IMG/VR virus record: IMGVR_UViG_3300046171_000252
Coordinates: 143,617 to 207,616 of that record
Reading direction: 5' to 3' (one strand)
Length of the DNA stretch: 64,000 nucleotides
Numbering within the stretch: position 1 is the stretch's first letter; each line of letters starts with the position of its first letter. Below the pieces are notes generated by a model, which was not told the origin of the DNA, ran no database searches, and worked only from the letters and a program-made list of their open reading frames with translations. The translations under genes and the position numbers were made by a program. Positions 3,683 through 48,077 of the stretch are shown here, in pieces.

Positions 3683-5979
3683 CCAATGGAATCAATGTAA
3701 AAAAGCGCAACGGAAGAGGGAAGGAACCACTTCTTCTTGAGAAGATGCATAGAATGGTTGATGAGGCATGTACCGACCTTGCAGGAGTCTCTGCATCGCA
3801 GGTAGAGATGCAATCTGGTATTCAGTTCTATGATGGTATTACAACTGCAGAAATTCAAGAGATTTTGATTCGCTCTGCTTCAGACTTGATCGACTTAGAC
3901 CATCCTAATTATCAGTTTGTCGCTGCTCGTCTCTTATTGTTTTCTATCCGCAAGCAATTGTATGGACGTAGGCATGAAATTCCAAAGGTAAAGGACCATA
4001 TATCAAGTTGTGTAGAAAAGGGTGTATATGATCCAGAACTTTTAACTTTATATTCAGATGAGGAGTTTGATAAACTTCAGTCGTTTATCGACCATGATCG
4101 TGATTATTTGTTTACATTTGCCGGTCTTCGTCAGGTTGCGGATAAATACCTAGTGCAGGATAGAAGCAGCGGTGTTTTATATGAAACTCCACAGTTCATG
4201 TATATTTTGATTGCTGCTACAATTTTTTCAAAATATCCAAAAGAAACCCGTCTGGATTACGTTAAAAAATATTATGATGCAATCTCCAAACACAGACTCA
4301 ACATCCCCACGCCAATCATGGCAGGAGTTAGAACACCTCTTAGACAGTATGCCAGCTGTGTTCTTGTTGATGTTGATGACACCCTCGATAGTATCTTTAC
4401 TAGCGATATGGCTATTGGGAAATATGTTGCTCAACGTGCAGGCATCGGTATCAACGCAGGCAGAATCCGTGGCATCAACAGTAAGATCCGAGGTGGAGAA
4501 GTACAACACACAGGTGTTGTCCCGTTCCTTAAAAAGTTTGAATCAACTGTACGATGTTGCACTCAGAATGGGATTCGTGGTGGTTCCGCAACAGTCCACT
4601 TCCCAATCTGGCACATCGAAATCGAAGACATCCTAGTTCTTAAGAACAATAAGGGTACAGAAGACAACCGAGTGAGGAAACTTGACTACTCAATCCAAAT
4701 TTCAAAACTTTTCTACGAACGTTTCATTACGAATGGAGAGATTAGCTTATTCTCACCGAATGACGTACCAGGTCTCTATGATGCTTTTGGTACTGACGCA
4801 TTTGACGATTGCTATGTGGACTATGAATCAGATCAGTCTGTTCCAAGAAAGACTGTCAAGGCACAGGATCTCTTTCTAGACCTTTTAAAAGAAAGGGCAG
4901 AGACTGGTCGTCTTTACATTATGAATATTGACCACTGTAACTCTCATTCTTCTTTTATTGACAAAGTTGAGATGAGCAATCTATGTCAAGAAATTACTCT
5001 ACCTACGAAACCTTTACAACATATTGATGATGAAGATGGGGAAATTGCTTTGTGCATCCTTAGTGCTATTAACATTGGTAAAATTAGGGACCTTGAAGAT
5101 CTTGATGTTCTTTGTGATCTTGCTGTTAGGAGTCTTGATGAACTCATTGACTTTCAAGGATACCCCGTCAGAGCAGCAGAGATTGCCACTAAGGCACGTC
5201 GTTCGTTAGGAATCGGTTATATTGGTCTGGCACATTATCTTGCCAAACATGGAGTCAAATACGACCAACCAGATTCTTGGAAACTGGTTCATGATTTAAC
5301 TGAGGCATTCCAATACTATTTGATTCAGGCAACTGTCAACGTTGCAAAAGAAAAGGGTGCATGTGAATACAGTCATCGCACCAAGTACGGGAATGGAATT
5401 CTTCCGATTGATACATATAAACATGATGTAGATGAAATTGTGCCGAATGAGCTTCAGTACGATTGGGAGAGTCTTAGAACTCAGGTTTTGGAATACGGGG
5501 TACGGAACTCAACATTGTCCGCACAAATGCCTTCGGAGAGCAGTTCCGTTGTGTCAAACGCAACAAATGGAATTGAACCACCTAGAGGATACTTGTCCGT
5601 TAAGAAATCGAAGAAAGGTCCTTTGAAGCAAATAGTTCCACAATATGGAACCCTTAAAAATAATTATACGTTGCTTTGGGATATGCCTGGGAATACTGGG
5701 TATATTAATATTGTTGCAGTTATGCAGAAATTCTTCGATCAAGCAATTTCTGGAAACTGGTCCTATAATCCAGAGCATTATGAAAATTCTGAAGTTCCTG
5801 TTAGTGTAATGGCACAGGATCTTTTAACTACATATAAGTACGGTTGGAAGACCTCTTATTACCAAAATACATACGATAATAAAAACGATGAAGTAGAGGA
5901 ATCTACGGAGTCTCTTGATAGTTTAATTTCTCAATTAGAAAACGCGGAGGAGGAAGACTGTGAGTCTTGTACAATTTAA
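3679..5979 (+). CDS. nrdA: ribonucleotide reductase class Ia alpha subunit
   Basis: N-terminal ATP-cone, TPIMAG, SCVL, SNLCQEI, C-terminal CESC; no intein/intron seen. Confidence 0.98.
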   Translation: MTNGINVKKRNGRGKEPLLLEKMHRMVDEACTDLAGVSASQVEMQSGIQFYDGITTAEIQEILIRSASDLIDLDHPNYQFVAARLLLFSIRKQLYGRRHEIPKVKDHISSCVEKGVYDPELLTLYSDEEFDKLQSFIDHDRDYLFTFAGLRQVADKYLVQDRSSGVLYETPQFMYILIAATIFSKYPKETRLDYVKKYYDAISKHRLNIPTPIMAGVRTPLRQYASCVLVDVDDTLDSIFTSDMAIGKYVAQRAGIGINAGRIRGINSKIRGGEVQHTGVVPFLKKFESTVRCCTQNGIRGGSATVHFPIWHIEIEDILVLKNNKGTEDNRVRKLDYSIQISKLFYERFITNGEISLFSPNDVPGLYDAFGTDAFDDCYVDYESDQSVPRKTVKAQDLFLDLLKERAETGRLYIMNIDHCNSHSSFIDKVEMSNLCQEITLPTKPLQHIDDEDGEIALCILSAINIGKIRDLEDLDVLCDLAVRSLDELIDFQGYPVRAAEIATKARRSLGIGYIGLAHYLAKHGVKYDQPDSWKLVHDLTEAFQYYLIQATVNVAKEKGACEYSHRTKYGNGILPIDTYKHDVDEIVPNELQYDWESLRTQVLEYGVRNSTLSAQMPSESSSVVSNATNGIEPPRGYLSVKKSKKGPLKQIVPQYGTLKNNYTLLWDMPGNTGYINIVAVMQKFFDQAISGNWSYNPEHYENSEVPVSVMAQDLLTTYKYGWKTSYYQNTYDNKNDEVEESTESLDSLISQLENAEEEDCESCTI

Positions 5980-46132: not shown

Positions 46133-46426
46133 ATGAACTATTCCATTACACTTAAAGCACCTGACGGCACCGAAAGTGTTATTGATTGTCCTGATGATTC
46201 TTACATCCTAGATGCTGCCGAAGAAGCAGGTATTGACCTCCCCTATTCCTGTCGTGCAGGTGCATGTTCTTCTTGTGCAGGTAAAATTCTAAGTGGTACT
46301 GTAGATCAAAGCGACCAATCGTTCTTGGATGATGATCAGATTGAGGCAGGATTTGCATTGCTGTGTGTATCGTATCCTACTAGTGATTGTGTGGTAGAGG
46401 CAGAAAAAGAAGAGGAACTTTACTGA
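46133..46426 (+). CDS. petF: plant-type [2Fe-2S] ferredoxin
   Basis: [13 protein letters not shown]...LLCV. Confidence 0.97.
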
Positions 46427-46433
46427 TAGGTTC

Positions 46434-46462
46434 TTGACAAATATTCTAATACCTTATATAAT
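46434..46462 (+). promoter_or_regulatory. sigma70-type promoter
   Basis: TTGACA-N17-TATAAT; shares TTGACAAATATT with the petF promoter. Confidence 0.85.
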
Positions 46463-46486
46463 TAATCATATGAGAGACCAACAAGA

Positions 46487-46735
46487 ATGAATGATCAATT
46501 TGAAGATGGACTGGAAAGATACAAAAAAAGAATGAACAATATCAAGGAAGAAAAACTTGATTTTGAAGATATGGAACTTCTTCAACTGGAGTTCTATGTA
46601 AGTGAAATGGAGAAAAATTGTTCGATGGGCGGAGAGATTCGTCGTCATGAATCCATCTACAATAAAATCAAAAAAGAACAATCACGACGAATTCTTGTTA
46701 AACTTGAAGAAGAAGCACTCGGTAAATTTAAATGA
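46487..46735 (+). CDS. hypothetical protein
   Basis: 82-aa charged helical ORF. Confidence 0.6.
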   Translation: MNDQFEDGLERYKKRMNNIKEEKLDFEDMELLQLEFYVSEMEKNCSMGGEIRRHESIYNKIKKEQSRRILVKLEEEALGKFK

Positions 46736-46956
46736 AAGATCAACCAATCACAGTTGAAGACTACAAAGAGCACAGTCAAGAGTTCTTTGATAAGTATTTC
46801 TATGTTGCCAAAGAACTTGGTGAAGGTGCTAAGGCAGAAGACATCCTTAAAATTATGGAGTCTCTTGCTGGTGTTATTATGAAGAAAAGGTCTGAAACTA
46901 AAGTAGGACCTTTTGGATTTAATAAAAAAACTTCCGAGGAATCTGAGGAGGAGTGA
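46732..46956 (+). CDS. conserved hypothetical protein
   Basis: 74 aa, ATGA-coupled, GPFGF. Confidence 0.65.
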   Translation: MKDQPITVEDYKEHSQEFFDKYFYVAKELGEGAKAEDILKIMESLAGVIMKKRSETKVGPFGFNKKTSEESEEE

Positions 46957-47129
46957 TGGAAATATTCAGTATTGAAGAATGGGAAAAGAATTTTGATGAA
47001 CTCTTCAAGAGAGTAGAAGACGGAGAGACAATAGGTATAGTTAAAGAAGATGGTAAGGCAGCAGTGATGATGCCTGCCGATGATGAACTAGTGCGAATAC
47101 ACACTGAGAACAATAACGACGCTCAGTAG
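46956..47129 (+). CDS. Phd/YefM-like antitoxin-domain protein (57 aa)
   Basis: NFDELFKRVEDGETIGIVKEDGKAAVMMP matches Phd N-terminal pattern; TGATG-coupled. Confidence 0.6.
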   Translation: MEIFSIEEWEKNFDELFKRVEDGETIGIVKEDGKAAVMMPADDELVRIHTENNNDAQ

Positions 47130-47139
47130 TTCATCATCT

Positions 47140-47227
47140 GCTCGTGAGACTTGGTAGTCAGAGAGGTTTTATAAACCTTTTCCTCCAGATTAGAGGCTTT
47201 GAGATGGTTCAAATCCATCCACGAGTA
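47140..47227 (+). tRNA. atypical long-variable-arm tRNA, anticodon TAT (Ile AUA?)
   Basis: GCTCGTG/CACGAGT acceptor, GATGG-TTCAAAT-CCATC T-arm, GAGGT-TTTATAA-ACCTT anticodon arm; non-canonical D region. Confidence 0.6.
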
Positions 47228-47230
47228 TTT

Positions 47231-47303
47231 GCTTCCTTAGCAATCTGGTGAATGCAGCAAACTCATAATTTGCCTAAGGAGAGTTCGATCCTCTCAGGAA
47301 GCA
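47231..47303 (+). tRNA. tRNA-Met (elongator) or tRNA-Ile2 (CAT)
   Basis: GCTTCCT/AGGAAGC, loop CTCATAA; G1-C72 so not initiator. Confidence 0.9.
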
Positions 47304-47306
47304 TCC

Positions 47307-47391
47307 GCGAGTATGGCGGAATCGGTAGACGCACCAGACTTAAAATCTGTTGAGCATTGTGCTCGTGGGAGTTCAAGTCTCCCTACTCGCA
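47307..47391 (+). tRNA. tRNA-Leu (TAA)
   Basis: class II cloverleaf, loop CTTAAAA. Confidence 0.95.
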
Positions 47392-47423
47392 TTTCTATAT
47401 AAATTTACAAACATTTTTTTAAG

Positions 47424-48077
47424 ATGAAAATTTTTCTGGACACAGCAGACACAGAACTGATTCAAAAATATAATAATACTGGTTTGATTGATGGCATCAC
47501 CACCAATCCCACTTTGATTATGAAGAGTGGTAGAGATCCTGAGGATGTTTATCAAGAAATCAAGGACATGGGAATCAGAGACATTAGCATGGAAGTTGTT
47601 GGTAGTGCTGATGAAATGATTACCGAAGGAGTTCGTCTATTTGAGAAGTTTGGTTTCTGCACCACAGTTAAAGTTCCCATGACTCGTGATGGACTTGTGG
47701 CATGTAGTAAATTAACTGAAAAAGGTATTCGTGTTAATGTAACTCTTATCTTCTCTGCTGCACAGGCAGTTCTTGCTGCTCGTGCTGGTGCATATTATGT
47801 CTCACCTTTTGTTGGAAGACTTGATGACCAATCTATTGCCGGACTGGAAGTTGTAAGGTCTATCTCAGAACTCTATCGCATTCAAGGTGCTCCTACTCAG
47901 GTTCTTTCTGCATCTATTCGGAGTGTTCAGCGTGCAGTGAGGTCATGGTATAATGGTGCAAATGTTGTAACGATGCCACCAAGTATATTTGATCAGATGT
48001 ATGACCATATTCTAACCGATAAAGGTCTTGAAATTTTTGACCGTGATTGTGAAACAATCAAATCTAATATTGGGTAA
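47424..48077 (+). CDS. talC: transaldolase (TalC/MipB type)
   Basis: FLDTAD, TTNPTL, VKVP, VNVTLIFS, YVSPFVGRLDD, LSASIR. Confidence 0.96.
   Translation: MKIFLDTADTELIQKYNNTGLIDGITTNPTLIMKSGRDPEDVYQEIKDMGIRDISMEVVGSADEMITEGVRLFEKFGFCTTVKVPMTRDGLVACSKLTEKGIRVNVTLIFSAAQAVLAARAGAYYVSPFVGRLDDQSIAGLEVVRSISELYRIQGAPTQVLSASIRSVQRAVRSWYNGANVVTMPPSIFDQMYDHILTDKGLEIFDRDCETIKSNIG

Follow-up and report, generated by a model that had tools for sequence, protein, structure and literature searches.

A strongly conserved, long-armed phage tRNA with a UAU anticodon that most likely reads AUA

A cyanophage genome encodes an 88-nt transfer RNA with an extra arm, a shrunken D-arm and a UAU anticodon, which most likely reads the rare isoleucine codon AUA and belongs to a large, essentially viral family. 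No description of a long-armed tRNA(UAU) in phages was found in full-text searches of an open-access library, and the gene is unannotated in the two cultured phages that carry it. The RNA lies in a 64,000-nt stretch of DNA (hereafter the window) that forms the last 64 kb of a 207,616-bp phage genome with 37.5% GC content. A talC gene lies just downstream of the locus and many cyanomyovirus matches surround it, identifying the virus as a T4-like cyanophage.

A preliminary description, made from the sequence alone, had pointed out an A at position 8, a 3-bp D-stem with odd spacing, a variable region with a CCTC/GAGG hairpin and a tRNA(CAU) 3 nt downstream, and each of these details is confirmed here. 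Its interpretation, which offered a TilS-independent AUA decoder, a mis-acylated recoding tRNA or a decoy against anticodon nucleases, is partly supported, the first option being the best supported. It did not foresee that the RNA belongs to a large viral family, that its nearest relatives are tRNA-Leu(UAA), that a neighbouring Phd-like gene is tightly linked to it, or that host isoleucyl-tRNA synthetase (IleRS) is of the Trp-905 type, which was reported to charge UAU poorly.

In bacteria-type translation, class II (long-armed) tRNAs are by textbook account restricted to Leu, Ser, Tyr and Sec, and AUA is read by a lysidine-modified CAU tRNA. A widespread, strongly constrained long-armed tRNA with a fixed UAU anticodon challenges both habits. 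The family appears to record a tRNA-Leu(UAA) body becoming an AUA reader, which makes identity switching directly testable with one phage-host pair, such as S-SKS1 on Synechococcus WH7803, and it raises the question of how an IleRS with the Trp-905 anticodon-binding site handles U34. Since standard annotation misses the gene, phage tRNA censuses and codon-adaptation studies undercount AUA readers.

Architecture and conservation of the RNA

ARAGORN calls a 90-nt tRNA-Ile(tat) at 47139-47228, one of seven tRNAs that it finds in the genome. The Rfam tRNA model (RF00005) matches 47140-47227 at 29.6 bits, just above the gathering score of 29, and leaves the D-arm unaligned. The minimum free energy fold of the 88 nt gives the same five-helix cloverleaf (−29.8 kcal/mol, z = −3.86), and 0 of 200 shuffles fold as well. 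The features of the RNA and of its surroundings are listed in Table 1.

Table 1. Features of the long-armed tRNA and its neighbourhood (window coordinates).
Position	Strand	Feature	Details
46434-46462	+	Candidate promoter of the precursor	Perfect sigma-70-type consensus (TTGACA-17-TATAAT), 12 of 12 match, a consensus match only; upstream of two small ORFs, the phd-like ORF and the three tRNAs
46956-47129	+	Phd-like antitoxin ORF	57 aa; ends 10 nt before the tRNA; PHROG 375, E = 8e-13; Pfam PF02604 at 29.1 bits, just under its cut-off of 29.8
47140-47227	+	Class II-shaped tRNA with UAU anticodon	88 nt, CCA not encoded; 109.7 bits with the family model
47140-47146 / 47220-47226		Acceptor stem	7 bp, with G1·U72
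47147		A8	The only connector nucleotide
47148-47159	+	Reduced D-arm	Stem GAC/GUC (47148-47150 / 47157-47159), 6-nt loop UUGGUA
47163-47167 / 47175-47179		Anticodon stem	5 bp, extendable by two pairs
47168-47174		Anticodon loop	UUUAUAA; A37 at 47173
47170-47172	+	Anticodon	UAU
47180-47202		Variable region	23 nt
47182-47196	+	Extra arm	Stem CCUC (47182-47185) / GAGG (47193-47196), 7-nt loop CAGAUUA
47197-47202		Linker	CUUUGA
47203-47207 / 47215-47219		T-arm	5 bp, loop UUCAAAU
47227		Discriminator	A73
47231-47303	+	tRNA(CAU)	Begins 3 nt after A73; not an initiator type (G1-C72); near-identical copies annotated tRNA-Ile2, tRNA-Ile, tRNA-OTHER or tRNA-Met in other cyanophages
47307-47391	+	tRNA-Leu(UAA)	Canonical class II tRNA, third member of the cluster; 33.1 bits with the family model, among the tRNA-Leu(UAA) genes that score highest of the non-members

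The RNA has the 7-bp acceptor stem stacked on a 5-bp T-stem, the T-loop of the UUCRAAU type, the GG in the D-loop and the 7-nt anticodon loop with U33 that characterise the tRNA cloverleaf. In contrast, it lacks the canonical D-arm and core, namely U8 and N9 as connectors, a D-stem of 3-4 bp at positions 10-13/22-25, A14 and A21, since A8 is the only connector and the D-stem is shifted.

The cyanophage S-SKS1 carries the same gene in the same place, with compensatory changes in the anticodon stem, the extra-arm stem and the T-stem. A DNA pattern taken from the D-arm and anticodon loop hit at least 119 IMG/VR contigs, and a second pattern, taken only from the extra-arm loop and T-loop and therefore constraining neither the D-arm nor the anticodon, hit at least 120 and added 47 members with variant D-loops or a variant position 38, all of which carry UAU and A37. 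Together the two scans yielded at least 164 instances, comprising 87 distinct sequences. A covariance model built from the family alignment (model R1) scores members at 99-114 bits and all other tRNAs at 39 bits or less, a gap of about 60 bits, and the family is therefore discrete.

Unconstrained drift, which had been named beforehand as an outcome that would mark the gene as a pseudogene, is not what the homologues show. On an alignment of 50 sequences (49 distinct), 99.6% of pair cells are paired and 16 of 27 pairs change on both sides, values that 0 of 500 shuffles reach, whereas controls with the partner slid by 1-3 columns give only 38-46% paired. Compensatory changes occur in four of the five helices, including six of seven acceptor pairs, four of five T-stem pairs and two of the 4-5 extra-arm pairs (CG/GC/GU and GC/AU/CG/UA). 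The D-stem is invariant, and its loop retains GG in the variants UUGGAA, UGGGUA, UAGGUA and UUGGGA.

UAU with A37, and A73, are present in 87 of 87 sequences, A8 in 86, G1·U72 in 81 and A38 in 69, and CCA is encoded in 49. The extra-arm loop CAGAUUA is nearly invariant, even in the scan that did not constrain it, as is the linker (C/U)UUGA. Three dedicated IMG/VR scans for members with any other letter at anticodon position 34, 35 or 36 returned only two hits, both chance matches without tRNA structure.

Several alternative pairings were considered. Pairing of UCAG (47158-47161) with UUGA (47199-47202) in place of the D-stem was not adopted, as all eight positions are invariant and offer no covariation test, and two variants with A21 changed to C would break one pair. 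A kissing interaction between the D-loop and the extra-arm loop (UUGG with CCAG) was rejected because D-loop variants (U13 to G or A) are not compensated in the extra-arm loop and the GG is needed for the T-loop. An 8-bp acceptor stem with a U−1:A73 pair, as in the 8/5 branch of tRNA-Sec, was rejected because position −1 is not conserved and may be U, A, G or C.

Distribution and exchange with an ordinary tRNA(UAU)

Among 50,697 phage records, which did not include that of the window itself, only S-SKS1 and S-SRM01 carry the gene. The pattern occurs in 3 of 185,579 prokaryote genomes; one hit is a contig in an Aquiluna metagenome-assembled genome that carries a 16-tRNA array and phage ligase and exonuclease genes, and the other two are Nostoc contigs of 31 and 41 kb. 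Model R1 run on 151 cyanobacterial genomes found only one of those Nostoc contigs and a tRNA-Leu(UAA). The family is thus essentially viral.

The family occurs in two settings. In T4-like cyanophages CCA is not encoded and the gene usually sits next to a tRNA(CAU), which is the next tRNA downstream in 70 of 145 family loci. In uncultured phages with very large tRNA arrays CCA is encoded. Of 23 arrays with 24-36 tRNAs, 21 show Ile(GAU) alongside the long-armed UAU and 16 show two CAU genes, typically one with a mismatched 1:72 pair as in initiators. In such near-complete arrays the RNA is usually the only obvious AUA reader, although a few also have an Ile2-like CAU.

In S-SM2, S-B05 and S-H68 the homologue of the Phd-like ORF is followed by an ordinary 74-nt class I tRNA(UAU) and then tRNA(CAU), while S-SKS1 and S-SRM01 carry the class II-shaped form. 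Of 80 IMG/VR loci with close homologues of the ORF, 75 had enough downstream DNA, and every one of these has a tRNA(UAU) or its relic at the same offset behind the same leader: 38 carry the class I form, 34 the class II-shaped form and 3 a truncated relic fused to the next tRNA. On a tree of the upstream flanking DNA the two forms require at least 8-11 switches, and well-supported sister pairs carry different forms. The two architectures are therefore swapped like cassettes, as expected if they do the same job.

All seven tRNAs of the genome serve A- or U-ending codons (AGA, AAY, GGA, GUA, AUA, UUA), and AUA occurs at 12.6 per 1000 codons, making up 18% of Ile codons. In a Codetta-style test on 123 ortholog pairs with S-SM2 (mean identity 59%), the partner residues at 373 aligned AUA sites fit Ile best, with a delta lnL of −53 for Val, −214 for Leu and −325 for Met. 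With symmetric exclusion of same-codon sites, the AUA profile (I 31%, V 22%, L 11.5%) matches those of AUU and AUC; the Leu fraction equals that at AUU (10.9-15.2%), against 54-67% at Leu codons, and Ser is not among the top residues. There is thus no trace of AUA being read as Leu or Ser over evolutionary time.

Inferred decoding role, origin and alternative readings

What the analysis establishes is a cloverleaf with an extra arm maintained by compensatory evolution, the fixed anticodon, A37 and A73 with nearly fixed G1·U72, A8 and extra-arm loop, the location of the gene inside phage tRNA clusters and, in cyanomyoviruses, its occupation of exactly the slot that holds an ordinary tRNA(UAU) in sister genomes. 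That this is a real, constrained RNA of the tRNA family is virtually certain, whereas its transcription, processing, charging, decoding and origin are inferred. A TilS-independent AUA/Ile decoder built on a remodelled class II body is the favoured reading and is judged more likely than not; it rests on the locked anticodon, the interchangeability with a normal tRNA(UAU) in the same slot, the position as usually the only obvious AUA reader in near-complete phage tRNA sets, and an AT-rich phage genome that uses AUA often. In this view the RNA is transcribed with the phd-like ORF and the downstream tRNA(CAU) and tRNA-Leu(UAA), probably from the consensus promoter, with no intrinsic terminator-like site found in 46300-47600. 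Host RNase P and a 3' nuclease would release it across the 3-nt spacers, the host CCA enzyme would complete it, and host IleRS would charge it using A35, U36, A37, A38 and A73. It would then read AUA without lysidine formation by TilS, supplying a codon that is rare in GC-rich Synechococcus hosts. Contigs from RNA libraries cover the locus, and one spans 46731-47303; one contig from an oligo-dT library runs from 46138 to 47303, with a 245-nt indel, across phd, the long-armed tRNA and tRNA(CAU). However, such contigs cannot show ends, strand or processing and may derive from DNA.

Several observations sit uneasily with isoleucylation. Of the bacterial tRNA-Ile identity elements (PMC9976931), A73, A35, U36, A37 and A38 are present in the window, but the wobble position is U34 in every member rather than G34 or lysidine. 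C4-G69 is present in the window but in only 12 of 49 family sequences, position 29:41 is G-C in the window, variable in the family and C-G in only 4 of 49, and U12-A23, G16, U20 and U21 cannot be mapped. All 30 IleRS sampled, drawn from cyanobacteria at large rather than an identified host strain, keep Trp (RCW motif) at the site of E. coli W905. In a study of the Mycoplasma mobile system, E. coli IleRS with Trp there did not charge tRNA-Ile(UAU) efficiently, Arg at that position was needed for efficient charging of a UAU tRNA, and unmodified UAU also read AUG on E. coli ribosomes (PMC3575796). This tension applies equally to the class I phage tRNA(UAU); the extra arm may be part of the answer, although no present evidence supports this. 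Class I and class II-shaped UAU tRNAs co-reside at three of the loci collected (L040, L057 and L073) and a probable tRNA-Ile2(CAU) lies 3 nt downstream here, making simple redundancy odd, and the truncated relics show that the gene can be lost.

Three lines of evidence point to descent from a phage tRNA-Leu(UAA), whose anticodon differs by one letter. A sequence HMM (nhmmer) ranks tRNA-Leu(UAA) first among 1,312 co-resident tRNAs, the 12 best non-member hits of model R1 are all tRNA-Leu, 10 of them UAA, and the only non-member hit in the 151 cyanobacterial genomes is a tRNA-Leu(UAA). Class I tRNA(UAU) and tRNA-Ile(GAU) are not detectably related to the family. The descent remains an inference, as shared class II shape and a nearly identical anticodon loop contribute to these scores. 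In this scenario an A36-to-U change was followed by remodelling of the D-arm; alignment shows a deletion of about 4 nt on its 5' side and U8 replaced by A8, a loss of the U8:A14 element that, together with A73, specifies Leu identity (PMC9976931), and this would have prevented leucylation.

A structured tRNA-like RNA not used for decoding is not excluded but is considered unlikely. It could be a decoy, a sponge or a regulator working with the adjacent Phd-like antitoxin, for example protecting or replacing AUA decoding when a host toxin attacks, or binding a host or phage protein through the extra-arm loop. The aberrant core, the nearly invariant extra-arm loop and linker (as expected for a protein-binding or tertiary site), the Phd linkage, the co-residence with class I tRNA(UAU) and the W905-type host IleRS speak for it, as does the inactivity in E. 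coli translation assays of structurally odd long-armed allo-tRNA(UAU) species, which in soil bacteria are associated with toxin-antitoxin genes (PMC5389517). However, the Phd link holds equally for the class I form and so says nothing specific about the long-armed one, about half of the family lies in large tRNA arrays far from any Phd gene, and no toxin gene is seen next to the ORF. The invariant anticodon with A37, A73, the CCA encoded in many members, the canonical T-loop and the D-loop GG are features of a working tRNA, and hosts are not known to have a tRNA with a UAU anticodon for it to mimic. There is no positive evidence for the proposed decoy against anticodon nucleases.

More doubtful still is a recoding tRNA charged by LeuRS or SerRS, which do not read the anticodon, that would insert Leu or Ser at AUA. 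The class II shape, A73, the relationship to tRNA-Leu(UAA), the major acceptor 5' strand GCGAGUG, identical to that of a phage tRNA-Leu(UAA), and a bacterial LeuRS identity based on A73 and core elements rather than the anticodon (PMC9976931) speak for it. It is disfavoured by the AUA substitution profile, by the loss of A14 and U8:A14, the main core determinants for LeuRS, by A73 in place of the G73 of tRNA-Ser and by the interchangeability with a class I tRNA(UAU), while A35 excludes TyrRS. A decaying pseudogene or chance fold might be suggested by the borderline Rfam score, the absence of annotation in S-SKS1 and S-SRM01, the several members missed by ARAGORN and the relics, but is refuted by the covariation data, the fixed anticodon and discriminator, and the gap in model scores. 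Beyond the favoured reading, it remains possible, though tentative, that phages have evolved a virus-only, fifth kind of class II tRNA, an isoleucine (AUA) acceptor derived from tRNA-Leu(UAA), in which the extra arm and reduced D-arm are functional determinants that might let a Trp-905-type IleRS accept U34, block LeuRS, limit AUG misreading or evade a host tRNA-directed defence. The result would be a TilS-independent AUA decoding system with a new tRNA architecture, exchanged as a cassette with the class I version among cyanophages.

Comparison with known tRNAs

The class I phage tRNA-Ile(UAU) of cyanomyoviruses (for example SSM2_186 of S-SM2) has the same anticodon loop (YUUAUAA) and A73, often G1·U72, and the identical genomic slot. 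It differs in its length of 72-74 nt, normal D-arm and 4-5 nt variable loop, does not match model R1 at E of 0.05 or better, and is annotated in GenBank. Bacterial tRNA-Ile2 with a UAU anticodon, found in Mycoplasma mobile and in Lactobacillus plantarum, likewise reads AUA with U34 and without TilS, and UAU and CAU species coexist in L. plantarum as they do here (PMC9976931; PMC3575796). Those tRNAs are class I, and M. mobile has an adapted IleRS (Arg865) and an adapted ribosome, whereas the cyanobacterial IleRS sampled keep Trp. The lysidine-dependent tRNA-Ile2(CAU) has the same presumed task, but has a class I body and requires conversion of C34 to lysidine by TilS.

Class II tRNA-Leu(UAA) of phages and cyanobacteria shares the long variable arm, A73, a GGUAG motif in the D-loop and a purine-rich anticodon stem. 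The long-armed RNA differs from it in the D-arm deletion, A8 without an A14 equivalent, the conserved 7-nt extra-arm loop with a 5-6 nt 3' linker, G1·U72 in place of G1-C72, and the anticodon. The RNA also lacks the G73 of tRNA-Ser and tRNA-Sec, the 8/5 branch and UCA anticodon of tRNA-Sec, and the GUA anticodon (G34, U35) that accompanies A73 in tRNA-Tyr.

The allo-tRNA(UAU) species (Mukai et al. 2017, PMC5389517) share a long variable arm, a UAU anticodon, non-canonical junctions and a neighbourhood of toxin-antitoxin genes. allo-tRNAs have 8/4 or 9/3 acceptor/T branches, a long D-stem with a tetraloop, G73 or U73, many different anticodons and a soil-bacterial origin, whereas the present family is viral and has a 7/5 branch supported by covariation, a 3-bp D-stem with a 6-nt loop, A73 and only UAU. 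What is described here is thus a phage tRNA for AUA in a new architecture, which works, on the favoured reading, like a TilS-independent tRNA-Ile(UAU) without being a member of that class I family, and which resembles tRNA-Leu(UAA) most closely but lacks its core determinant.

Copies, relics and other long-armed tRNAs

Some contigs carry both a class I and a class II-shaped tRNA(UAU), as seen in the IMG/VR contigs L040, L057 and L073, and in L057 each of the two tRNAs has its own TTGAC(A/T)...TATAAT-like promoter, which argues against simple redundancy. Relics of the long-armed tRNA were also identified, in which the 5' half, up to the end of the anticodon arm, is fused directly to the next tRNA(CAU), whilst the extra arm and T-arm are deleted. 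On the tree of the flanking DNA, the three relics sit next to intact copies. In S-SRM01 (L178), an HNH endonuclease gene lies between the long-armed tRNA(UAU) and the tRNA(CAU), which are otherwise adjacent.

Other class II-length tRNAs with class I anticodons occur in phage arrays, namely Cys(GCA) of 91 nt with a U73-CCA end, Gln(UUG) of 87 nt with a Leu-like D-arm, and Asn(GUU) and Pro(UGG), each of 84 nt. Long-armed versions of class I tRNAs may be a wider phage theme.

Positions of the features described in this section (L numbers denote phage contigs and loci collected during the analysis; approximate positions are marked ~)
Feature	Sequence	Position	Strand
Phd-like antitoxin ORF	window	46956-47129	+
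Phd-like antitoxin ORF	L177	348-518	
Phd-like antitoxin ORF	L178 (S-SRM01)	1266-1448	
Phd-like antitoxin ORF	L184-L263		
Relic of the long-armed tRNA	L048	~4410-4530	
Relic of the long-armed tRNA	L065		
Relic of the long-armed tRNA	L122		
Relic of the long-armed tRNA	L207, L218, L220	885-1003	
Class I and class II-shaped tRNA(UAU) in one contig	L040	5551-5623 and 11410-11497	
Class I and class II-shaped tRNA(UAU) in one contig	L057	6373-6460 and 6580-6653	
Class I and class II-shaped tRNA(UAU) in one contig	L073		
Class II-length Cys(GCA)	L145	4532-4622	
Class II-length Gln(UUG)	L159	4426-4512	
Class II-length Asn(GUU)	L128	1175-1258	
Class II-length Pro(UGG)	L105	8108-8191	
Extra-arm loop CAGAUUA	window and family-wide	47186-47192 (window)	
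G1·U72 of the long-armed tRNA	window	47140/47226	
Class I tRNA(UAU) with G1·U72	L177	519-592	
Class I tRNA(UAU) with G1·U72	L194	~886-958	
Class I tRNA(UAU) with G1·U72	L040	5551-5623	
Indel variant in RNA-library contigs	window	46485-46731	
Small ORF absent from the indel variant	window	46487-46735	
HNH endonuclease gene	L178 (S-SRM01)	1632-2051	
tRNA(CAU)	window	47231-47303	

Conserved elements and annotation of the tRNAs

The G1·U72 pair is kept in 81 of 87 long-armed members and also occurs in several unrelated class I phage tRNA(UAU) genes, suggesting a shared functional constraint on the first acceptor pair. The nearly invariant extra-arm loop CAGAUUA has at its centre GAU, the anticodon of the major tRNA-Ile, although the flanks are non-canonical (A instead of U33 and U instead of A37) and this may be coincidence (1 in 64).

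The long-armed tRNA is systematically under-annotated. ARAGORN fails to call clear family members in L005, L022, L026, L042, L051, L219, L223, L228, L232, L235 and L238, although the covariance model scores the six of these on which it was run (L219, L223, L228, L232, L235 and L238) above 100 bits, and the gene is also unannotated in S-SKS1 and S-SRM01. Annotation of the adjacent tRNA(CAU) is inconsistent, with near-identical copies labelled tRNA-Met, tRNA-Ile, tRNA-Ile2 or tRNA-OTHER across cyanophage records. This tRNA lacks initiator features and, if it is Ile2, two of the seven phage tRNAs would serve AUA.

The upstream region and the Phd-like ORF

RNA-library contigs of related strains join window position 46485 to 46731, representing a 245-nt indel variant that lacks a small ORF. 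The Phd-like antitoxin ORF is an orphan of 57 aa, to which only the N-terminal part of PF02604 matches, and no toxin gene lies beside it. A tRNA(UAU) of either architecture, or its relic, follows this ORF in 75 of 75 informative loci and in five cultured cyanophages, which parallels the toxin-antitoxin neighbourhood reported for allo-tRNA(UAU).
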